Shown piece by piece: positions 3,128 to 41,600 of a stretch of 64,000 nucleotides of DNA. Origin of the DNA: Oculina patagonica. Taxonomy: Eukaryota. A program made the translations under genes and the position numbers. Numbering within the stretch: position 1 is the stretch's first letter; every line of letters starts with the position of its first letter. Where the stretch lies: positions 2,914,001-2,978,000 of the forward strand of contig NC_135771.1 of assembly GCF_052425735.1 (NCBI RefSeq), in the 5' to 3' direction. The notes under the pieces are model-generated. The model was not told where the DNA came from. It searched no databases and saw only the letters and a program-made list of their open reading frames with translations.

Positions 3128-6100
3128 GTAAGATGGAAATTATTTTACTGACCCACGGTCGGAGCAGCTATGACTCCCACGAGGAGTTCTAAACTGGAAA
3201 CGATACAATCCATTGTTAGAAACTCACAACAACGTAAAATAATTGGTTGCTTGCTCGAACACTCGATTGTTTCGTTAAGTGGTAAGGTTACTTAGCTGTT
3301 AGCTCTGCTAAGGTTGTGAGGAGGGGGGTAGGGTTGGACGTGAAGTATTTTCTCACAGTGGTGGAGGCGAGGGTACCCTGCTGGGCTGGGTCGCTATGAT
3401 TCCTTAATTCACGTGTTGTTCTGCAACAAAAGCGCGAATTTTTTTTCAAATAACACAGGCGCTTTTGAAACGCAGACTTTCTTTCCGATGCTGTCGTATG
3501 TTCTCTTGGGGGCTTATTTCTTTTTCAGACCTTTTGAGGGGCGGGAAGGGAGGGGGGGGGACTACAGGGGTGACTAAAGAGGAGGGGGCTTAATAAGTCT
3601 TTTACGGTAAGTGCCCCTCCCTCTCCCCTAATTTCTTGCGTAGATGTCATCTGGGCTGGTCAGGCGTTTTTCCCAAATCCTGAAGGGAAAATAGCATGAC
3701 GATCCCAAAGCAACTCTGCGTAGGAGGCCACCCTTTCCCCGATTACAAGGCTCCCTCACTCAAAAAGAACCTTAATTGTAAGAAAATAAGCCCAAAGCTT
3801 ATAATCAGGATTTTAAGGGGCATGATGTGAGCGCAAATATTAAAAGATATTTTTTTGCTTTATAGTATGCGGGCAGGTTGTTAATAACACACTGACAAGT
3901 CCCGGATACCCAAACAATTACCCAAACAACATGGACTGTGTTTATAGGGTCCCTATTCCAGCTGGCAAGGCAATGAATATTTACTTCAACGAGTTTGTCG
4001 TGGAGTATCAGATATACTGCAAGTAAGGAACGAAATAACAAGCAAAATATATCCATGGAGTGAATAGAAATCACACTGATTACGTCAGTAACATTTTTAT
4101 TTTTTGTTTCCACCACTTCGTTTAATGATCTTAATGGGTTTTTCCAGTGCTCAGTATATCTTACCTTTTTTTCAAAGTGAATTAAAATAAGCTTCAAATT
4201 TGTAAAAACATTATGATGCAAGAAAGAGAGTATGACGTTGATCCCCTCTTGTGCGTAAACTAGCTCATTATTAAGCTAATGGCTCACATAAAAATTCGCT
4301 TGGCGTTGGTTGTTTTAGCGAGCATTAAAATGATATGCAGAGAAAGATAGTACTTGGCTGCCGATAGTTTGTCTTCATAATTTTGTTGTGTGGCAGGCTT
4401 ACTACAGTTTTGAGGGGTAAATTAGCCAAACATTTAAATCTTTTTGTAAAATCTTCAGAAAAATTTTGTCTTTCTCTTATTGCTGTTTGTTACAGCGTAC
4501 AGCCACCATATGCGGCAAAAAAATCTGTAAGACAGATTTTGAACTATTTTAAAATAGGCAAAACACCACATTTTCTTATTTTGCGAAAAAATTATCTTAC
4601 AGATTTGTATTTTATTTTGCATGAATGTTTAATCAGAGCCAATCTATATTTTCTGAAATTTTGAGATGGGGTCATATGTGTAGATTTTGAGAAAACCGAC
4701 ATTTAAACCGGGTACTAGTGCCCAGTCCTTTCTTAAGCACTCGGTCGTTCATTTTGGCTGTTTATTAGCATTTTTATTGTTCAAATGTCACATATGATGA
4801 CTGTGCGCAGTTACAAACAGCAATAAGAGAAAGACAAAACATTTCTAAAGATTTAACAAAAGAGTATAAAGTTGGGCTCATTTACCCCCTCAAAACCCTT
4901 ATGTCTGATAGCAGAAGCCGATAAGGTGTTTTTGCCGATATTCAACAAAGCAATCCTCAGCTCGGGAAAAACTAGAAGCATTCTATGAAGAGAAAACAAA
5001 AGGAATAATTATACGTGCACGTGCCCGATGGCACGAACATGGTGAAAAAAGTACAAAATATTTCTTGAACTTAGAGGAAAGAAATCATGTCAAGAAATGT
5101 ATACGAAAATTATACATTAATGGTGTAATTAACACAGATCCGACTTACATTTTAAGGGAACAGGAACGTTTTTATTGTGATTTATATAAAAGTGGCAATA
5201 ACGATCCAGACATTGCCCTAAAAAGGTCCACCTTTTTAGGTGATTTAAATATACCCAAACTTTCCGAGGAACAGAGAAGAGAGTGTGAGGGTAAAATCTC
5301 GCTAGAAGAATGTTCTTGTCTCCTTGATAGCTTTCGCGATAACAAAACACCAGGAAACGATGGCATTCCTATTGAATTCTATAAAAAATTCTGGCCTCTA
5401 ATTGGCGACAGTTTTATAAGATGTGCAAATGAGTGTTTTGAAAAAGGTGAGTTGTCCTGCTCCCAAAAACAAGCGGTGATCACTCTTATCGAGAAGAAAG
5501 GAAAAGATCGCTCACTCCTTGAAAATTGGCGCCCAATTTCCCTTGTTAATGTTGATACGAAAATTATGTCAAAAGTAATAGCTTCAAGAATTAAAAATGT
5601 TTTACCCGAGATTATTCATCACAACCAGACAGGATACGTCAAGGATCGCTTTATAGGCGAAACTGTTCGATCTATTTACGATGTAATGGACTACACTGTC
5701 GAAGAAAACATCCCAGGCCTCATGATTTTTATTGATTTCAAAAAAGCATTTGACAGTGTAGAGTGGGATTTTCTTTTGAAATGCCTAGAAGCTTTTAATT
5801 TTGGCCCAGACTTCATTCGCTGGGTCAAAACGTTTTATAAAAACATACAAAGCTGCACCATTAATAATGGTACTACGACCAAGTATGGACTGAAGTCTGT
5901 AAGATACTGGGCGGCGAACGCCTGGAATCAACTGCCAGACCGAGTAAGAACAATTGCTACACTACAGGCCTTTCGTAATGCTGTGCGCAGCTAGATAGTC
6001 CCTTTTTAATTTTAAAATTAATTTAATACTTATTTATTAATGAATTTTTCGTTCTGTATATATTTTTACATTTGTAATTTATTTTCTCGGCATATTAGCA

Positions 6101-9100
6101 TATGTTTTGCTAGGGGCCTAGCCAGCCCCCGTCAGCTCCGAGGGTAAATAAATTTTATTGATTGATTGATTGACTGCTTCACGATATTTTACGCTCGAGC
6201 GAGGTGTCCGGCAGGGAGATCCACTCTCCCCTTACCTTTTTATATTAGTCGTTGAAACTCTGGCAATCGCTATGCGTCAAAACAAAAGTATTAAAGGAAT
6301 AATGATCGAGAACGAGGAAACTAAGCTTTTACAATATGCAGATGATACAACTGCAGTGCTCTCAGACATTAATTCAGCAGAAACATTGTTTGAGTTATTG
6401 GATAGTTTTAAAGCGATTTCGGGACTTGAGATAAACTGTACAAAAACCGAAGGCATGTGGATTGGATCATCTAAGGAAAACAAAACGAAACCCTTCGGAA
6501 TCAAATGGCCGAATGAACCGATTAAGGCCCTTGGAGTGTATTTCACTTATGATCAGAAACTGCTTAAAGAAAAGAATTTCATTGAAAGATTGGACAGCAT
6601 CAAAAAGCTTATCAACATTTGGTCCTCAAGAGGCCTATCAATTTACGGAAAGGTGACAATTATAAAATCATTTCTAATCCCAAAATTTGTTTACACATGC
6701 TCGCTTTTGCCCACACCTAACGAATTGGTTAAACAATTGAATCAATTGCTATTTAAATTCCTGTGGAAAGGAACAGACAAAGTAACACGCTTGTCAGCAA
6801 TAAATGAATATGGGAAAGGTGGCCTAAAAATGATCGACCTAGAGAACATGGTTAAATCTTTAAGATTAGCATGGCTAAAACGAATATTTAATGGCAATGA
6901 TGGAACATGGAAGCAGTACTTAAAACACCAATTAAAATCCATTGGGGGTCTTTTCTTTTTTAATTGTAACTACGATGTTAACGATTATACAATCTCTTCC
7001 CAGTTTTATCGTGAACTGTTATTGTGGTGGTCGCAATTCCGCGAAAATTTTGCTACCGAAAGGAACTGGCAAAACATCATTTGGAATAACAAAGAAATAC
7101 GAATAGACAACAAGCCTGTTTATTACAAAAATTATGTTGAATCTGGAATCATCTGTATAAAGGATCTGCTATTCAATTTAAACAATATTGACTCCTTTGA
7201 CCGCGTTTCATATAAAATAAGTAAAACTAATTTTTTACAATGGGCAGGCCTTCGCCACTCTATACCCAACCTTTCAAAAGGTAGATATGCATGCCCGTCA
7301 CTTACATCTCCTTCATTCTTCATTGACCACAACATCTTCGACGTGAAGAAAAAGAAATCAAAAGATTATTATTCGCTTCTTGTTATGAACAAAGCACAGC
7401 CTCCTAATATTGTTCATAAATGGAAAAGCGATTTCAATATTTCGGATGATCAACTACGAGAATTTTTCACATTACCTCATTCCGTTGTACTCGAATCATA
7501 TGTAAAGGCCTTTCAGTACAAAGTACTTAACAATATTCTTTACACGAACACGAAATTACACAAAATTGGTTACAGAACAAATGATTTATGTACTTTCTGT
7601 GAGGCGGAACCAGAAACTTTGTATCACTTTTTTTACCAGTGCTCCCGCGTCAGGCAGTTTTGGAATGATTTTGAATCTTACTGGTACCTCTTATCAAATC
7701 AAGTAGTTCGTCTTACTTTGCAAAACGTTTTGTTTGGAATAATATCAAAACAATGCCCTTCACTTGATTTACTAAATTATTTTATTATTATTGGAAAATT
7801 GTTTTTGTGGGACTGCAGAAGAAACCAAACATATCCTAAAATTCAAGGTTATCAGAACAAAATACTTACTAAATATGAAACTGAAAAGAAAATTAATAAG
7901 AAAAGATATTTCGAAAAGAAGTGGATATATTCTCCCAGATAATAAGTAAGGAATTATAGTGCTAGATTCGCTTTTTTTTTTTTTTCGTGTGTTTGTTGCT
8001 TATTTCTCTTTGTTGCGTGTATTAATTTCGATTATTAAAAGTCCAAACTATTGATGTAAACTTGCTATATGGAAATTATTATCATCTGTTACTTAATTGT
8101 AAATTAACACTTGTTACTTTTTTTTATTCCAATCACCTATGTAATGCTAAGTGTGTAAATATCAATAAAGGAAAAAATTAAAAAAAAAAAAAAAAACAAA
8201 AAAAAAACAAAGCAATCCTCATTGCTAGTCCGCATAAATTTCTCATGGCATTGGTTCGAAGACTCTGTCAAGGAATCAATCAATTTGGTGATCATCTTCT
8301 AAAAATTATTATGGCTTATTTTATTCGCAGCTATGACTATTTGGAGATCACCAACGAAAACAATCAGACATTTGGGAAATACTGCGGCTCTAGATCTGGA
8401 TTGACCGTCGTTGTAACTGGGCAATACGTTGTGTTAAAGTTCCACTCTGATCGCTCTTTTACCTACAAAGGATACCGGTTAACTTTCAGTGCTTTCTGTA
8501 AGTACGGTCACATACAGCGCATATGGTATTGACCCATTCCGAAAAGAATTAACAATTATTCACCGAAGTGGACGTGAATAATTGTTAATTCACTGACACT
8601 GAGGTGAATAATAGTTGTTTAAGTAAGTCTTTAAGTATATACTACACAAGTTGAATAACTAGCGGACTAAAACACATTCGGTAAACAAAGCGACACGCCA
8701 AGGCAGTTTGTTTCTCTTTAGCTGCTCAGAGGTGAATAGTACTGAGCTAATTGCCTCCGAGTTTACCAGTTAGCGCGCGCAAAAAGCACTATTCACTTGT
8801 GCGGTATATACTAACTACTGTTAATTTTTGTCGCCCAGTTGAACCATATAGAATATATATATCTGTATCCACCACCAGTAAGTATAGTAGGTTCGCCAGT
8901 AGACCGTGTGTGCTCAGCATTTCACCCCAAGTAAAAAAAAAATGATTGGATGCCTAATGATTCCATAACTAAAAGAGGTTACATTTCTGGTAAATCTTTC
9001 TAAAAATTCTACACGACCTCCACTCTAGCGCTCATCTTCTTCCAACAGACACGAAACGCAGGAATTGATCTTTGTCTTTTCGTTTTACGAATTGGTGTCA

Positions 9101-30696: not shown

Positions 30697-33603
30697 ATGC
30701 AGCCCTTGTTTATTCTGATCCTTTGCGTAGAAATTGCAGCTATAACGGCAGGAAAATCAGACAACCATGGCTCAAAGCTCAGAGTGAAGAGATTTTTGAA
30801 TAATTCCGAAGACTTTACGGGAAATACACTTCACTCTTACATGAAGCAACTTTACAACACGCGAGCGAAAGGTAATGAAAATGGCAGTTTTACAATCTCC
30901 TTGCGAGGGCAGAAGATTATTGCTACCACAATTCGTGGTTTTGGGCCGGAGAAAAGCGGTAAGAACTCTGAAGAAGTGTGCTTTATTATAAATATTGTAA
31001 GTGCAGTTACCTATAATAAAGTAGATAGTTATCAGTGAATCTGTTACAGTTGTATCAAGTATGTAAAGTAAAGTGAGTTGTTGGAAAATATGTCAATGTG
31101 CGTGTTTTTTAAAATTTATTGCAATGTAAAGTTATGTTAAGTCAATTCTATTCCTCTCCCTCGTCTTAGTTTAATTTACCTGCCATTTTTTGAAGGCAAT
31201 CTGTTTACACGTATAGTGTGTTAACAACAATGTTGACATGAAAATATGCAATTAATGAAATCTTCCAATTTTCTGTTTCCAATATGCTAGTCAGAAATTT
31301 AAAGTTTATCGTTCAACAATAAACTTTAAAACAGAAAGTTTCTGTTTTCGGCTTTATTCTACGAAACTGCACTTCTTGAAACACGAAACGGTGATTTCAA
31401 ATTAACTTGCTTTGGGTATTGCTCGCCCCGCACGGACGCATGAACGAACACAGAGAAGTCAGTTAATTTCACAGTATATACATGCTGACTGAGCTATACC
31501 TTCACTTCGAGAGCAATTCCAAGAAGTCATTTCCGCGTGTTTTTTAGACAGGACCTTTACTTATGATTACAGTACTATTGTTTAATAGCGCTACTATTAC
31601 ATTTTATCTATTGAAGCGTGTTGGGCAAAAATCACTAAATTTTAAAGCGCTCGCTAAAATTTGTCTCGGTCAATTTTTTAAAGTACCCACACCTAAAGGA
31701 AACAAAAGTTAACATTATTGACCTGAAAAATTCGTTAAAAAATAGATGCCGGTAACTTTGTTCCTTCTGGCAATGCAAATGTTCGTTCAATTTCAAGTGA
31801 GTTTGTTCTTTTACTAAACATTTAGTTTCATCTTAGTTATGTGTTCATTAAAAACTGGTCTACACGATATCACTAACTTTTTAAATTTCTCGGAAAATCA
31901 CTATATTAAAAAGTCGCTAAATCTTGCTCTGAAAAAATAGCTAAAATTAGTAGCCGCTAAAAATAGTAATCTGTGTGTTTTTTCTCAGAAAATGACAGAA
32001 TTTAAACTTGTTCTAATGCATACAAGAGCTTACAGCGACTATTATTAAACAACATTTTCTTAGGGACCACATGGAAAGGCTCGACCATCGAAATGCAGTT
32101 TCGTTTGGGAAACGCTTTCAAACAGGAAATTATAGCGGAAGCTGAACTGATTGTGACTTCTAAACAAGGAAGTCTGTGGATGAATCGCAAATACAATGCC
32201 AGTGTTTACTTTGAACAATCCATTTTGGCGCCAAATGGCACGAGCTTGTTGGATTCTCGAGCTTTCCCACGCAGAGCAAATGTTGAGTTTGGACTGAACG
32301 TGACAGGTGCTGTAAAGGCTTGGAGTCTTGCAACAACGAAGACCTACAAACTACAGGTGAAACAAAATTTCATATTTTTAGAGCAATTTTCAGTTTATTG
32401 CACAAGGTATATATCTTCCGTTTCATGCTACACAGTCGGCATGAAAGCTTTTTCTCATAAATGTTCAGGCATTTTGCATGGCACTTCTTGTTGGGAGCAC
32501 TTTTTAAAATAATTTCTGAAATTATGGTTTTTCATTTATTTATACTGTGTGTAGAAATTTTATGTTGATCACTTTTGGAGCTTAACTAAACCCCCTACCC
32601 TCTACCCCCACCACAATACTAAGAATATTTTTCAATTAAAATGCATGGCTGGCGCTATGGCAAAGGACAATTTTACAAGTATTTCTTCAAAAAAGAGAGC
32701 CGGCAACAAGAAGTACTGGGTATTACTTTACATTGTGTGGCTCCATGCATTCAAACGTTTCAAATATTTTATCAATCAGAGATTGAACCGTTCTGTCGCA
32801 TTGTAATACCTCTATCTTTTACTTCATTTTGTCAATGCCCCCTTCCTTCCTTCCTTCCTCCCTCCCTCCTTCCTTCCTTCCTTCCTCCCTCTCTCCAAAC
32901 CACCCTCCCTTCCTCCCACCCTCCCTTCCTCTCTTTCTCTCTTCTTCCCTCTCACCCTCCCCCCCCCCCAATCATCCTTTATTCATACATTTCCTTATTC
33001 TTTTAGTTAAAATTAGAAGATTTGGTTCAACCCAATGGTACCAGAGCTCCTGTGTTACATGTGTGGAGATGTATCAAGCATGGCCACATCCATGGACCCT
33101 TCCTGGTACTGTACACTCGATCCAAACACGCAAATAACAAAGATGACATCTGGAAGTTGGTGACGCTCAACTGGCTTGCACTGTCCTCCAAACCAGACAA
33201 CACCACTGTGGGCAATAACAAAGATGTCACTCCGAAAGGACTTCCTGGAGAGAATGATGGCCGAGTTCCAAGGAACCCTACCCTGACTTGCTACCAGGTG
33301 TCATTTTCCATCAAAATGCAAGACTTCTACACCAACATTATCATGCCGCAGATTGGTTACGTCAACTACTGTGATGGCTATTGTTATTTTCCAATCCAGA
33401 ATCACTTGACGCCCACCACACATGCTATTATTTGGGCAATGTGGTGGAAGAGACATAGCCCTGATACCTACACACCCAAGAGACCACAGTGTGTTCCATC
33501 TAAGCTAGGAAGTCTATCTGTGATCTTGTCGGACCCTGAAACTGGTCACCCTGTGCAGAAAGAGTGGCAGGAGTTTTCAGCCAAAGAGTGTGGCTGTCGT
33601 TAG
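30697..33603 (+). CDS. TGF-beta superfamily ligand precursor (BMP/GDF/Nodal-like, divergent), 383 aa
   Basis: Exons 30697-30958, 32064-32356, 33007-33603 join in frame (1152 nt); signal peptide MQPLFILILCVEIAAITA; prodomain motifs (YMKQLY, TTIRGF, AEL, FGLNVTGAVKAW, PFLVLY); RVPR furin site; mature domain with CDGYC, PTTHAII, CVPSKL, ECGCR*. Confidence 0.92.
32842..32970 (+). repeat. CCTT/CCT pyrimidine-rich low-complexity tract
   Basis: (cctt)n/(cctc)n directly visible in the intron before the last TGF-beta exon. Confidence 0.85.
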
Positions 33604-35674
33604 TGTTCTGTCCTTCAGTTTACCACTGACTGACATTGTGTTATCCAATGTAAAATTTACATATTTTGTTAGAAATCACTTGCAGGGGAAACGTTCCTTG
33701 AATATTGTAACCCCTTACCCCTTGTTTCAAAACGTTTTTAGGGATTTTTGTGTTTACTGCTCTGCATAGTTCTTGTTTTCCCCTGAAATAATGTCCTTGC
33801 CACAACCCCAGAGAGCTTCTGTTATTGTGTGTGGTAGTAATATTGGGTTTATTCAGTTTTAAGATCTCAACTGGAATAACGTACTTCTGTTAGGAAATAC
33901 CAGTGTATCCAAAAGTCCAAAAATGCACTTGCATCAGTTTGAAAATAATTTATAGTTTTTTTGGTTTAATACAAGGTTGAAGAAATACCTTAGATGCGTT
34001 TTTTTTATTTTTTGACAAGGAACACATACGTTGGGGGGGGGGGGGCATTTTTTGTCTGTTCCTTTGCTACATTAAGAAGTATGAGACTTGTGGGAATGTT
34101 ACAGTTTAACAATAGATACAGTCTAAATATTTCAAGAATTGAAAGTTGTAGGATTGTTTACTGCAATAAAGCACATGGCTAATGAGTTATTTAACTAATT
34201 ACTACCAAAACGTAAAGAATCGCAGAACTGATAACCAATTCATAGACCGGAAGTCGTCATAACCAGACGAAACGTTAAGAAATCAGGTGACCCCTGAAAA
34301 GCCCGGGAAAGTCACGTGGTTGTGGTTTTTCACCTGATTGGGTGAAAAATGTCATCTTTGCTATGATTGGTTAGTTTAGGTTTGACAATATAGAACACTG
34401 CAAGTGCAAAACCATTTACAGTTAACAAATGAGATTCTGCCGCGAGTCACTGGGGAGGCGAGATGAGCAAGCAAAGCTGGATTTCGTTGAATTGACTAAA
34501 CAGACTAAATAGTAACTTAACTTTGCAAGTTATTGTCTACTACAACAAATTATTGTGTTAACCAGTCAGCTACTACATAACTGTTTAATTTAGCAGTATT
34601 AGCTAGACTGTAGTGAAGAAGTGACTGTAATATTTAAACTGTACTGTCATTTGGTAAGGTGTAAAAAGTACCGATTATAATAAAATTTCGTTATTTTTTA
34701 TATCGGAAAATGAAAATCTGGCAGTCGATTAAATACAAAGGGACGACCATTAGACTGTTTGCTACAAAAAAAAAAAGAACGCCACAAGACATCAGATGGA
34801 GTCGGCTTGTGCGAAAACTGGGGCAGATTTCTAACGCAACCTTGAAAGTTTTAGACTAATTTTCTCAAGGTACGTACGACTTCAGTGACTTTGAAATTTG
34901 CATCTTTCTCAGACCAAGCTTTGTAAACTCGATTTTGCCTTACGAAAAGACGAATGGAAAAATATTGCTCCCTATTTTTGAAAGTCGCTACGGACTTTTG
35001 CTTCGTAAACGTTTTAACGTTGAATTTCGATGTAGTTCCAAAGCACAATTGCAACGAAACACGGGGAAAAATGGGAAAACGTCGCGCATTACGTTTCCCC
35101 GCGCAACAGGGCTGTTAAAAACGTTTAAGTAGGATGAAGTAAAGGCACGCCTCGCTGAAAACTAAGCTGCATTATAGTAACTAGGTTGTTAATGAGTTAC
35201 CTTAACTCTTCAAGTTCCAAGAATTTTATGATAATTTTTTAATTTATCAATACAATGTCAAGTTGACAGGCGGTGATCTTGACGTTCCACCAAACGTTTT
35301 CAGACTAACTTTAAAAGTTCTCTGGCCCTATCCCCCACCCGGGGGCAAGGAACTGCCATCCCAAATGTTTCGTTCCCCGCCCGACCGACCCGAGAAAAAA
35401 AAAAAAAAAAATTCCAGCGCAGACTCATACAGCACCGTCTGTTAACACATTGGTTGTCACCGAACACGACTGAAAGAAAACGAACGAAAGACACGTCGAG
35501 TGACTGTATCAGGCCACTACCGCCCGGCCGAACCCAGACCCTAGTGTCACGACGACCGACCGACCGACCCACCACACAAGAAACGGGGGGGGAAACGAAA
35601 CATTTTATTGGGATGGCCTAAACTAACTTTAAAAAAATACATGACAACTAAATTCATATATAGTAAAGAAGTAT

Positions 35675-38600
35675 TCATGGTTTAAGCTTTGGGCTTAAAG
35701 AGTTTATAGTAGCACCAACAATCGAGAACGCAGCCCAGTGCTGTGGACTTCGTGTGTTCTCTTTTACTTGAAGAACCTTCATGGCCCTTTGTAACGATAC
35801 CGCAGCATCACGGGAAGCCTTGTATTCGCGGTAAAATGATGTCATGAGCTCCGACGCGGATCGGTCGTCAATCTTCCACAGCGTGACAATCACGCAAGCT
35901 GCGCCAGCTGCCAGAAACGCGCGTGACAGACCTACAAGAACAGATGATGTTGATAGTACTCGTTAATGAACACGCCCATTTTAAGATGGTGGCTAGGCGA
36001 CTACATACACCACCAAGCCACTCGCTTCCCGATCCACTTACATTTAAGGTGTATATATAACGTACGTGAAATAACCCGTTTACTTATGTTTCCCAGCCCT
36101 TTATCATAACGCACTTGTAGCTCCTAGTTATTACTTGTCCCAGCTTTTACGTGCTGAACTAAACTACACCTAGAAGCCAAGGTAGATTCCAGTCATTCAC
36201 AGCTGTTTAGAAATGGCCAATTCCATAAGGTTTATTCGTCTTCACGGGAGCTATGTTTTTTTTATCGGGTTTTGGATTCTGAGTAGACCCTATATCTATT
36301 TTTCGGGGTCAGATCGAGTGCGCGATAAATCACAGTTTACACGAAGAGGTGCCAATTCACGCCCCTGCACATCGGGTGTCCTCGCGCGAGGTGATGTTTG
36401 CTCGCGCGCTCGTCCGACTTGACTAGTCCTGAGAATAAATGACGGACAGTCACGGACTACATGTAGTCTAATCGGGTTTCAACAATACTTAGAAAAGAAA
36501 AACTTACCCAGTACTCCGTCTCCTGTTACTTTACCCAGTCCAGTATCACAACAGCTCAACACCACAAGTTCAGCTTTCAGTTCCATGCCCCTCACCTCCT
36601 CCGCAGTCAGAATACCGTTACACTCGAGCCCAGACTTCGTCAGAACAATGAGCCCCTTCATGCTAAAATCACCGTGGGAGTCTGTGTCGTCAATAATCGC
36701 ATGGGTTGCAAAGTGTAGAATTTTGTACTTTGGCATGGCTGTCATCACGTCTTTCTTTTTGGCTTGTGTTCCTATAAGCACTTCTGACTTCGGCGAGTTT
36801 ATGATCTCGCTGATCATGCGCACTTCGAGCTGGGCGGAGGGAAGCTGCGGAAGCTCTTCGAAAGGCATTATGGGATTCCCGACCGCGAGGAGACTGAGTT
36901 CTAGAGACGCCGTAGCCTGTTCAGTGCTCTCACGGGAGGCGCAGGCTAGTTCAAGAAAGTGTATGGCCGGACTAGTCGAGATAACAAAGTCTTCCATCAT
37001 GTAATGATCTCTTGCGTCGCTTTGGAGAGCAGCAAAGGGAACCTTTAGCAAGAAATCCTGAGGAATAAAAGTAACCCGCGGATTTTCATCTTTGGTAGGC
37101 AGGAATTCCACAATGGGCTCAATAAGGACCTTGTGAAGTTGGCTTAGCATAGGTATCCACGGGTCCAATTCAGGATCACTCTCGTGTTCATCATGTTGGT
37201 CTTTCAAACGCGCACCTGAGGGTTCAGTCAAGACATTAAAAGGATCTGGCAGAGTTCCCACAGAAACGTCATCGCTTCCTGCAACAGAAACCAATACATC
37301 TTTAACTACTTCAGTACGATTTTCACTTTGAAGTTGAGTGCTAGATGTCTCGTTGGTTGCTGTTTCAAGCTTTGAATTTATGCCTGGGGCCTCATTCACG
37401 ACATCATTTAAAGGACCTGGCGGAGTGCCCGCAGAAACGTCATCGTTTGCTGCAACAGAAACCGTTACATCTTCATCTACTTCAGTATGACTTTCACTTT
37501 GAAGTTGAGTACTAGATGTCTCGTTCTTTGCTGTTTCAGGCTTTGAATGTGTGAATGGGGCCTCATTCACGACATCATTCAAAGCACCAGGTGGGATGCA
37601 TGGGGCCTCATTCACGACATCATTCAAAGCACTAGGTGGGATGCATGGGGCCTCATTCACGACATCATTCAAAGCACCAGGTGGGATGCATGGGGCCTCA
37701 TTCACGACATCATTCAAAGGACCAGGTGGGATGCATAGGGCCTCATTCACGACACCATTCAAAGGACCAGGTGGGATGCATGGGGCCTCATTCACGATTT
37801 TTAGGGGTGGGGGACCTCATTCAAAGGACCAGGTGGGATGCATAGGGCCTCATTCACGACACCATTCAAAGGACCAGGTGGGATGCATGGGACATCATTC
37901 ACGACATCATTCAAAGGACCAGGTGTAATGCATAGGGCCTCATTCACGACATCATTCAAAGGACCAGGTGGGATGCATAGGGCCTCATTCAAGACATCAT
38001 TCAAAGGACCAGGTGGGATGCATAGGGCCTCATTCAAGACACCATTCAAAGGACCAGGTGGGATGCATGGGACCTCATTCAAAGGACCAAGTGGGATGCA
38101 TAGGATGCATGGGACCTCATTCACGACATCATTAAAAGGACCAGGTGTAATGCATAGGGCCTCATTCACGACATCATTCAAAGGACCAGGTGGAATGCAT
38201 AGGGCCTTATTCACGACATCATTCAAAGGACCAGGTGGGATGCATAGGGCCTCATTCACGACATCATTCAAAGGACCAGGTGGGATGCATGGGACCTCAT
38301 TCACGACATCATTAAAAGGACGGTTGGGCCTCATTCACGACATCATTCAAAGGACCAGGTGGAGTGCTTTCAGGAACGTCACAATTTTTTGTAGCAGAAT
38401 CCTTCTCTTCTTTAGTATTTATTTCACAGCTCTTGCTGTTTGCAGTTTCCAACGACGTTCCAACACTTTCCAAATCTTGAGAGGTTTCTTTCTGATGTTC
38501 AAAGAGCTGTGGAGATTCGTTAGAATTAACATCAATTGTATCGAAGGCTGCAGTTTGCTCTTTTACTTCGTTTTGTTGCAGGGTTTCACAGAAGGAAGCT

Positions 38601-41600
38601 TCCGAGATATCTCCGCTCTTCGAAAAATCGTGGTATTCTGCTGTTTTAATTTGTGAAGTTTCTTTGTTATTTTCCACATAATTTACAGAAGTCTCGCCAG
38701 TTGCGCCTGGGTTTCCTGTGGTTGTTTCATTCAGTGAGCAGGTTGCTGGGTTGTCTGTTGAATCTCCAAAGGTTTTGTTTTCTTCTGAAATCGAACTCTC
38801 TTCCGCCTTTATTTGACTTGCCACGACAATATTTGCTTCAGAAAGACATATTGTTGGTGTTGATTCCTGTAGAGTTTCAGTAATCTGTAAAGCTTGTTCT
38901 GATCTACCGTGCACACTTTCTGTTTCGTGATCAGGTTCTTGACCAAGTTTCAAAGTAGCGCCTTTCATTGTGGGTAATGGAGAACACCACTGGACTTGAT
39001 CATGAGAAGTTGAAGGACATTTTACATCTTCGATTGCGGATTCTTCGGGTTCACCATTTAAACTTTTGCCAGTTTCGACTTTACTCTGGGTGTAACTTTC
39101 TGGATTATATGCGTCGCTCTGAAAATTAGGTCGATCATAAAATGCCTTATCCTTGGTTTTGTACGGTACGCTTAGACTAGAATGAATTAGTTTGTTTTTG
39201 GTATGAGTGTTACTTTTACCCAGGCCTGTTGCAAACATGAGTTGCAGTCCTTTTAGCGAGCTCAGCACGTCCTCGCTTTGAAGCGTTGCTATGTGCGCTT
39301 TTGCTTCCCTAGAAACTCTCAGGTGCTTTTCACATCTGAGAATTTTACCCATGTCCTCTATTTGAGATGGCCGACCCATGGACCGCCTAAGAGACAAGAC
39401 ATATTCATCGTTGACTTCAACCTTAGTCTCACGGATACCGTGTTGTAGACGAGATTTACTGAAATTGAGCCGGCCGGATGGATGCAGTACCCATGCAAAG
39501 ATCCAAGAAAAGAATGCTCCTGACTCGTCGAATTCTTTCACCACAGAGTAAAAGACCAACGTCGTGGAAAGCTTACGGCTGATTTCTAGCAGATTATTAA
39601 AGGATTCCGCTATAAATTCTTCATTTAAGGTGGTTGCTTCAGCTCCAGAAGACTTGTAGCCACATACCCGCTTCCTAACAATTTCGGCCAACGCTCTCCC
39701 TCGATTAGAATCTGCCAAAACTAACGCCTCTTTATACTTCATCTGAGCGACTAGTACAACTTGTAACAGATTGTACGCCTCAGCTTGGTTCTTCTCAAAA
39801 TTCGACAGCTTTGATTTGTCTTCTTCGCCAATCTGAGAGCGAATCTTTTCCAGCGTTTGAAAAGCATCAAGAATTGACCTCTCTGCTTCAGGTAGTTTTC
39901 CACAAAGGAAATAATCCATAGCTAATTGATGCTGCATGATCGCTACACCACCGATGTCCATTCGCCTTTCTGCATTGTCTCGGTAATTTATATGGCAGTC
40001 AATCGCGTCTTCGAATCTTTCTAACGCTCTGTATACAGTACCTAGATTTCCCCATGCCATTCCTTCGCCTGCAACGTTTCCCGCCCTCTGGGCCCCTTTT
40101 AAGGCGATTTGAAGCATCTTAACCGCCTCTTCGTTGTATCCTAGCTTTGTATAAAGCTTTCCAATTTTGTTGCATGCAATTCCCATGCGCGCAAAATCAC
40201 CCACCTCTTCGGAAAGCGAGTATTCGATGAACTGTAACACTACAGAGTCGTCAAATTCCTCGGGATTGTAAAATTTCAAGAAGCCGATATTACCACAGGA
40301 GATGGCTAGGCCGTGAATATCTCCTCTGCTCAAGGCGAAGTTGTGATGAACTGTGTGAAGTCTTTCTGCATCTTTGTATCTGAAACGAATCATTGACTGC
40401 GTGGGCTAAATCTTTAAAGACATCTGTTTATACGAGGAAATACAGGGGGCTCTCCGCAGTCTTAAATCTTTGAGTTTAATTACTACCTTTAAGACGAATT
40501 TCACCATTTTCACTGTAACGCACCCATTACGCCTTTTTTTGTTAAAAAGTATTAGGTATGCCAGTCTTTTTTTTTTCCTCATTCGCCTTTTCTCTTTTTC
40601 TTTGTATGATTTTTTTCATTAGAGTTATGAAACAAAGTCTTTAGAATAGTTGCTACAAAATACCCCCTTTCTATTCTCATGCCTTCGGCCCTCGTAATAT
40701 TTACTAACAGAAGAAAAAATCATGTTCATTTACCTTCCTTCCGATCTGAAAACATTGCCCAAATCTCCGCAGCAACTCGACACAAGCCCGACATCCTTCA
40801 TATCCTTGGCTAGATCCAGGGCTTCACGAAGATACTCTTTAGCTCTGCCCCAGTCTGCCGCAGATCTACATGCATTTCCATAGTGCTGTAGATAGAGGGC
40901 TCTTGTGTGCGTTCTCATGGTGGTTTTGAAAGCCATCAGAGGCTCAAAGTACGTCTCTATAGCCTCTTTTAGTTCTCCACGATCAAGCAGGCAGGTTGCA
41001 AGGTGTATCTTAGCCAAGGTTTCTTTGTCAAAATCCTGCGCAGATGCAGCAATTTCCTGAGCCCTCTTAAACAACTGTTCTGCTTCGTTTAATTCTTTGA
41101 GTAGACGATGTATCGACCCCAGATTCAGACAAGCATTAAATAACAGCAGCGATGTCACGAGAGTATCTGTTGAAAAGCATGTAACAATTGAACACACCAG
41201 ATTGTAAGAAGGAAGTTGGAATTACAATGTAGGAATTTTCTGCCAGGGAATCTCTAAACTGATGGCCGGGAATGCTTTTCATGCCTTTAAAGGGTAAAAA
41301 TTATTAGTGTGTTCAACATTTATTAACCAGCCTACCCCCCTTTTGAAGAGGGGGGGGGGGGTTAGGTGGAGAGAAAGGGAGAGAGAATTTATTTGGGAAC
41401 CCAAGATATCCAGATTCTTAAGGTAGGGGTAAGGGTAGAGCAAGATATTTAAACATCTCTGTGTCAGTTGGGTACGTTATCTGGCCATTTCCTTGGGGTA
41501 AACAGTTGTTTTATCATATTTTTAGTTTTCATCATTGACATGTAACTTTCATCACTGATTTTTATCAAAGACATAGCATCATCATCATCATCATCATCAT

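Follow-up and report, generated by a model that had tools for sequence, protein, structure and literature searches.

In bone morphogenetic protein (BMP)-type ligands, the inter-chain disulfide of the dimer is made by the first cysteine of a CC pair (Cys78 of BMP2), and the surface that finger 1 and the wrist helix contribute to the dimer contact is also the wrist epitope for type I receptors, as in the complexes of BMP2 with BMPR-IA. GDF9 and BMP15 keep their finger-1 tryptophans; Lefty lacks the long wrist helix and carries a C-terminal extension past its last cysteine. The second body axis of corals and sea anemones is established through BMP signalling, and a role in the calcification of corals has been suggested for BMP2/4; studies of cnidarians have centred on the few ligands that they have in common with bilaterians. 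Among vertebrates, according to the S5 legend of one study, the inter-chain cysteine is missing in only a few ligands, of which Lefty is one (PMC4564238). The gene described here, which encodes a TGF-beta preproprotein without this cysteine, is located at positions 30697-33603 of the plus strand of a 64,000-nucleotide stretch of the genome of the stony coral Oculina patagonica (contig NC_135771.1, positions 2,914,001 to 2,978,000; this whole stretch is called the window below, and positions are those of the window). We consider it reasonably probable that this is a functional gene for a secreted ligand of the BMP/GDF type, which represents an orphan clade conserved across stony corals and forms the usual dimer, with a rebuilt wrist and without the disulfide.

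The coding sequence comprises 1152 nt (383 aa, no internal stops), and its third exon matches the Pfam TGF_beta profile (PF00019) over positions 2-104 of 104 with a score of 52.9 bits (E 6.9e-14; the score cut-off is 27). The mature cystine-knot domain (109 aa; 33274-33600) begins five residues ahead of the first cysteine, ends with CGCR followed by the stop codon, and contains exactly six cysteines (C280, C307, C311, C347, C380 and C382). These six are invariant in the alignment and show the C-x-G-x-C and C-x-C spacing of the knot (CDGYC and CGC), the pairs predicted by homology to BMP2 being C280-C347, C307-C380 and C311-C382. In the HMMER alignment to BMP6, 'rpqCvp' stands opposite 'kpCCap', that is, the first cysteine of the CC pair is replaced by Q346 (codons CAG TGT for Q346 and C347 at 33487-33492, with Q346 at 33487-33489). 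Finger 1 contains the segment DFYTNIIMP (33322-33348) in place of the canonical GWxDWIIAP (LGWQDWIIAP in BMPs): both tryptophans, and hence the W-x-x-W motif of canonical BMPs, are gone, the segment is two residues shorter (DFY--TNII versus GWQDWII), and the alanine of the I-A-P motif is a methionine (I-M-P). The wrist helix (THAIIWAMWWKRH; 33418-33456) is predicted to be helical and contains WAMWW, a motif that is conserved as WA[LMI][WLI]W through the coral clade. The original prediction had picked out the six cysteines with QC for CC, the replaced tryptophans and the WAMWW motif; the gene model and the alignment bear out all three and add the deletion in finger 1.

Among ligands of known structure, the closest relatives of the mature domain are BMP6 (3.4e-14), GDF5 (3e-13) and BMP2 (4e-11), followed by BMP9 and BMP10, whereas activin (~1e-6) and AMH match far more weakly. 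By similarity, the window ligand is of the BMP type, not of the activin, TGF-beta or Lefty type. Like BMP5-8 (BMP6/7), GDF5-7 and BMP2/4, it has a knot with CxGxC and CxC, a wrist helix, CGCR at its C-terminus and RxxR after the prodomain, but it differs from all of them by the absence of the inter-chain cysteine and WxxW, by I-M-P instead of I-A-P and by the tryptophan cluster in the helix; the identity to these families is about 30%, and on the trees described below the ligand falls into a long-stemmed clade of its own, apparently nested in none of them. GDF9 and BMP15 have the same six-cysteine pattern with the inter-chain cysteine replaced and, where a non-covalent dimer is concerned, are the best analogues in terms of function. 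Nevertheless, the window ligand has no specific sequence affinity to these vertebrate oocyte factors and appears to have arisen separately within cnidarian BMP-like ligands, a comparison made with reference rows among which no GDF9 or BMP15 was named. With Lefty, the ligand has in common the missing dimerisation cysteine and a precursor in which RxxR occurs more than once. The description 'Lefty-like' in the original prediction is nonetheless not upheld: the helix is retained (predicted at mature residues 49-61), the chain ends in CGCR, and the similarity is to BMP6, GDF5 and BMP2, in comparisons for which the PDB contained no Lefty and none of the 150 best representatives bore that name. The gene appears to have no kinship with Lefty, GDF3, GDF9 or BMP15, and its loss of the cysteine would therefore be independent, as had been proposed.

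A missing cysteine could in principle reflect an error of assembly or sequencing, a mutation private to this genome, or a decaying copy that is no longer expressed, and low expression in the runs examined, with a single read in a poly(A) raw-read run (X19), is what a decaying copy would lead one to expect. The gene was compared with contigs of two RNA-like runs from different studies (X1 and X2) and of a DNA-like run (X11), which carry three organism labels between them. All three cover the CAG TGT codons and show no difference from the window. Altogether, 12 variants were found in the coding sequence (6 silent and 6 replacement), none of them in a cysteine codon. The gene model is supported by spliced contigs: an X2 contig bridges the junction of exons 1 and 2 (30957|32063), contigs of both X1 and X2 bridge that of exons 2 and 3 (32354|33005), and these junctions coincide with the modelled ones after the shift of an ambiguous G or AG. 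One X1 contig begins at 30681, and the intron depth in the RNA-like runs is zero except for a high-copy repeat in intron 1. The window gene is single-copy in its own genome. The orthologues described below all lack the cysteine, with intact open reading frames (ORFs) and splice sites in seven genomes and a mature-domain dN/dS far below 1. Because reads, orthologues, gene structure, synteny, selection and copy number agree, error, private mutation and pseudogene were rejected, and we regard this family of explanations as exceedingly improbable.

All three exons are on the plus strand and are separated by GT-AG introns. Exon 1 (30697-30958), which ends in phase 1 at a GT donor, encodes the start codon, the signal peptide and the N-terminal part of the prodomain; exon 2 (32064-32356), with orthologous exons in six coral loci (L041-L046), encodes the prodomain core (TTWKG...YKLQ) including N-glycosylation sequons; and exon 3 (33007-33603) encodes the last part of the prodomain with the cleavage site, followed by the mature domain and the stop codon. 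Introns 1 and 2 span 30959-32063 and 32357-33006, respectively. All seven N-glycosylation sequons of the precursor belong to the prodomain and none to the mature domain. The 3' untranslated region (33604-33830), the limit of which is given by RNA-like contigs ending at 33816 and 33830, contains no canonical AATAAA.

The set of coral orthologues comprises 17 sequences with 59-83% identity over exon 3. The inter-chain cysteine is absent in 17 of 17, its position being occupied by Q, H, L, V or M, and this variable position is surrounded by near-invariant blocks (NYCDGYC.FPIQNHLTPT.HA, SDPETG..VQKEW and ECGCR). Six cysteines are present in the mature domain of each of seven orthologues, and all orthologues have a hydrophobic, signal-like N-terminus. 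Among these proteins are Pocillopora verrucosa XP_058943257.2, annotated as 'growth/differentiation factor 6-B-like', and the Stylophora pistillata 'Growth/differentiation factor 2' (P0172). The TGFb_propeptide domain (PF00688) is found in the Pocillopora and Stylophora orthologues (weakly in one search, and also in precomputed annotation). Searches with Pocillopora P0151, both whole and with the mature region alone, returned Stylophora P0172 and P0173 only. The six orthologous loci L041-L046, one of them from Pocillopora, were rebuilt with three exons, intact frames, GT-AG introns and homologous phases, and four of them (L043-L046) share with the window a downstream TPR-CHAT neighbour encoded on the minus strand. 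The synonymous divergence among orthologues ranges from 0.5 to more than 2, and the pairwise dN/dS (Nei-Gojobori, NG86) is 0.08-0.23 for the mature domain and 0.15-0.41 for the prodomain, which means purifying selection that is most pronounced in the mature domain. When 1.84 billion representatives were scanned exhaustively with phmmer, no match scored below the orthologue cluster (273 bits) and above the level of ordinary BMPs (76 bits or less), with the single exception of a 66-aa orthologue fragment (79 bits). There thus appears to be no close orthologue outside corals within the scanned library, which does not amount to proof of absence. These data support the earlier proposal of a lineage-restricted, probably non-covalent ligand of a cnidarian, in this case a stony coral, and show the loss of the cysteine to be fixed and old. 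No description of this coral clade was found in the literature searched, which was covered in part and included a 2024 review (PMC11226491). Two orthologues have already been named by similarity through the NCBI pipeline.

The precursor begins with a hydrophobic signal peptide (MQPLFILILCVEIAAITAG; 30697-30753) and contains two RXXR motifs, both of which had been noticed in the original prediction but which differ in their conservation. RVPR (33262-33273), an R-x-P-R convertase-type site with an atypical proline at P2, immediately precedes the mature domain, fits the minimal R-x-x-R convertase rule and is conserved as R-x-P-R in 16 of the 17 orthologue sequences (the exception, L045/P0180, has RSAH). 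RVKR (30781-30792), a dibasic, furin-type motif 10 residues past the predicted signal cleavage, is not conserved: the position reads RVKR, RAKR or RTER in three orthologues and RVGS in one, and in the Pocillopora-type genes a deletion has removed the segment. Even at the window locus, 30782 G>A in part of the X2 contigs changes R29 to K and the motif to KVKR. The upstream RVKR, judged from the aligned sequences, is not a family feature. The precursor would enter the secretory pathway, and cleavage at R-x-P-R would free the 109-aa mature domain.

Two phylogenies of the mature domain give the coral sequences a clade of their own within BMP-like ligands. In a quick LG tree of 128 rows, the 14 orthologues included are monophyletic (98 SH-aLRT) with a stem of 1.26 substitutions per site; in a second tree (71 rows, LG+C20 PMSF with ultrafast bootstrap, four long rows dropped, 112 columns), the clade is supported at 100/98, with a stem of 1.21 substitutions per site and terminal branches of 0.035-0.16. 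The clade comes out separate from the named BMP subfamilies (2/4, 5-8, GDF5-7, 9/10 or ADMP), a provisional placement that rests on 112 columns and on reference rows that are representatives without names. The very long stem and the short internal branches point to a single burst of change and later constraint.

The only sister group of the coral clade in the 71-row tree (98/87) consists of P0005 and P0008, which come from ENA and metagenome assemblies. Long-branch attraction was flagged as possible for this grouping in the LG tree; in the tree rebuilt with the C20 mixture model, from which the four long rows had been dropped, the grouping persisted at 98/87. P0005 and P0008 share with the coral ligands the two-residue deletion in finger 1, the absence of the inter-chain cysteine and a longer loop between helix and knot, and their prodomain is also the best match to that of the window gene. 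They differ in that the identity is only about 25-30%, the second tryptophan is kept (SWII), the last exon is unsplit, the genes are multi-copy in their host, and the loci are not syntenic and have no TPR-CHAT neighbour. In the reciprocal search of the Oculina genome with P0005/P0008, the window gene came first, narrowly (1.4e-12 versus 2.0e-12). A 90%-identity cluster formed by P0005 and P0168-P0171 (ENA ERZ26695794 and others) has RC in four members and CC in one, a one-base difference of the CGT/TGT type. Two copies of this cluster lie on separate contigs of one assembly, each adjoining a DDE_1 transposase, and one of them is followed by a further TGF_beta ORF 9 kb downstream.

The AlphaFold2 model of the mature domain, built from 32 aligned sequences (pLDDT 84), has two fingers, with strands at 7-14, 27-34, 73-86 and 93-108 and the helix at residues 49-61 of the mature domain; its Foldseek matches are GDF5, BMP6 and BMP2 (TM 0.62-0.68, prob 1.00). 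The homodimer was modelled with an ipSAE of 0.65, compared with 0.00 for the best of three controls, with 90-95% agreement between runs and a pLDDT of 85-86. In the calibration of the dimer tool, the mark was reached by 21 of 30 homodimers of known structure but by none of 23 such monomers (17 of 29 and 0 of 30, respectively, for eukaryotes). In this model, Q72 (Q346) contacts Q72 of the partner where the disulfide would sit, and I53, W54, M56, W57 and R60 of the helix pack against I13, D17, F18, V30 and Y32 of the partner, and W328 and W331 of the wrist helix pack against the opposite chain. It follows from these modelled contacts that the rebuilt segment of finger 1 would oppose the tryptophans of the helix across the dimer contact. 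The mature domain would form the usual butterfly dimer, lacking the disulfide, either as a homodimer or with a second BMP as its partner; on our reading, this dimer is probably non-covalent, homo- or heteromeric, with a remodelled wrist. Because the changes in finger 1 and the tryptophans of the helix share one surface, where the dimer interface is also the type I receptor wrist, the coral family would probably combine a rebuilt dimer contact with an altered type I receptor preference.

A broader version of this scenario includes the sister sequences. The coral clade together with P0005/P0008 could be an old line, cnidarian or wider, of BMP-like ligands that are obligately non-covalent and whose dimer and type I receptor wrist was rebuilt by a cross-interface swap of aromatic residues, the finger-1 tryptophan pair being deleted and a tryptophan cluster being gained on the opposing helix. 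We put this forward tentatively and regard it as rather unlikely.

The same surface changes bear on the possibility that the ligand is an inhibitor which, similar to Lefty, BMP3 or engineered monomeric TGF-beta, binds type II receptors, co-receptors or other ligands, fails to recruit type I receptors for want of the WxxW pocket and the covalent dimer, and dampens BMP or activin signalling. The loss of both finger-1 tryptophans and of the alanine of I-A-P, along with the absence of the inter-chain cysteine in all orthologues, would fit such a role; the altered surface is strongly conserved, as befits a specific binding function, and an engineered monomer, mmTGF-b2-7m, which acts as an inhibitor, is present in the PDB. 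Against inhibition stand the lack of affinity to Lefty in sequence and structure, the retention of the wrist helix and the confident modelling of a canonical dimer, as well as the established fact that GDF9 and BMP15, in which the same cysteine is missing, are agonists. Judged from the sequence, either signalling or inhibition may result; on the evidence cited, inhibition seems to us rather unlikely.

The missing covalent lock would also be compatible with an obligate heterodimer subunit, inert alone and active only when co-translated with a canonical BMP (compare Nodal-Vg1/GDF1 and GDF9-BMP15), with the tryptophan-rich helix docking on the tryptophan-bearing fingers of the partner. The helix tryptophans indeed lie within the modelled inter-chain contact, and the 53 Pfam TGF_beta matches in the Oculina genome (529 Mb) include many candidate partners. 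This arrangement appears improbable all the same, given that the homodimer itself was modelled at high confidence.

For the reading that we prefer, a functional secreted ligand with a disulfide-free dimer and a rebuilt wrist, several considerations weigh on the other side of the scale. The RNA support is thin (contig depth of about 5, one read in X19), and expression looks low. The proline at P2 is atypical for furin and RSAH replaces the site in L045/P0180, so that processing is not assured. The dimer model may reproduce remembered solved TGF-beta dimers and therefore speaks for likeness, not for binding; a receptor, a Smad pathway and a dimer partner are all putative. Finally, conservation 'across Scleractinia' is extrapolated from Pocillopora, Stylophora and the window genome and from the extent of divergence (dS up to more than 2).

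The original prediction held that the dimerisation cysteine is missing in only a few ligands. This is true of vertebrates but does not apply generally. In Oculina itself, the inter-chain cysteine is also absent in three paralogues, L005 (TC), L008 (LC) and L013 (LC), which are clustered at C1:44036915-44119040 and are otherwise ordinary BMP-like ligands (L005 matches BMP2 at ~3e-27), whereas their sister gene, L004 (C5:18035725), keeps CC. This is a second, independent loss of the cysteine within one genome. Among non-redundant database relatives, the cysteine is absent in 11 of 97, including proteins of the nematodes Ascaris suum and Soboliphyme, and at least 8 state changes at this position are needed on the 71-row tree. 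Across the sequences aligned, loss of the inter-chain cysteine is recurrent in invertebrate TGF-beta ligands and common outside vertebrates, which corrects the textbook impression of a rare event. What is distinctive of the coral family is the combination: the cysteine is missing, WxxW is lost with a deletion, the helix is rich in tryptophan, and this state has been frozen clade-wide after a burst of change.

The window gene encodes a strongly constrained ligand that appears to be private to stony corals and has neither the covalent bond of the dimer nor the type I tryptophan pocket. As such, it offers a natural experiment in how dimerisation and signalling, or inhibition, can proceed in a TGF-beta ligand that lacks the canonical features, and it becomes a candidate modulator of coral BMP signalling. 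Under the broader and rather unlikely scenario that takes in P0005/P0008, stony corals would possess a ligand with a partner or receptor specificity of its own, and axis patterning or the skeleton-forming tissue could be where it modulates BMP2/4-BMP5-8 signalling.

Within the Oculina complement of TGF_beta matches, few full-length paralogues are as divergent as the window gene, which scores 54 bits where 80-131 is typical. Among the paralogues, two short 'BMP2-like' genes on C13 (L007/L028, XP_078351854-type) come closest to it, with mature domains 45-46% identical to its own; an exon of L007 matches Oculina patagonica XP_078351854 at 100% identity over 108 aa. These genes, too, lack both tryptophans of finger 1 (IGYDHFMIVP) and have a tryptophan in finger 4 (DWQD); they differ from the window gene in that the CC pair is kept, the precursor is only 197-208 aa long and they form a separate clade. 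Most of the 53 matches belong to tandem arrays of BMP-like genes (loci L006, L010-L012, L014-L025, L027, L029 and L030), in which the last open frame is about 120-180 aa long and the prodomain is short or absent. The arrays are located at C4:43.44-43.86 Mb (0.42 Mb; 12 full and 3 partial), C4:54.07-54.12 Mb (6) and C1187:0.45-0.48 Mb (4 full and 2 partial), and they are a large coral-specific expansion.

Some further features of the window touch the ligand gene or its surroundings. The TPR and CHAT (caspase-like) neighbour, at 36479-40393 on the minus strand, is split in the window into three ORFs, 38312-40393 (TPR), 37801-38334 and 36479-37795 (CHAT, E 3.5e-37), whereas in the four other coral loci it is a single ORF of 850-1050 aa. 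Intron 1 contains, at about 31600-32040, an interspersed repeat of very high copy number, with a depth of tens of thousands in the DNA-like run and hundreds in the RNA-like runs; variant joints are numerous in it, and one of the 'opposite strands' kind, at 31649/31934, suggests the inverted ends of an element similar to miniature inverted-repeat transposable elements (MITEs). In intron 2, a CT-rich simple repeat (CCTTCCTTCC...; 32834-32973) lies just 5' of exon 3, and in the database ORF P0173, from a close relative, a tract of the same kind has been translated into a spurious N-terminus. At 5065-7942 on the plus strand of the window, two adjoining ORFs with RVT_1 and zf-RVT domains represent the remnant of a non-LTR (long terminal repeat) retroelement.

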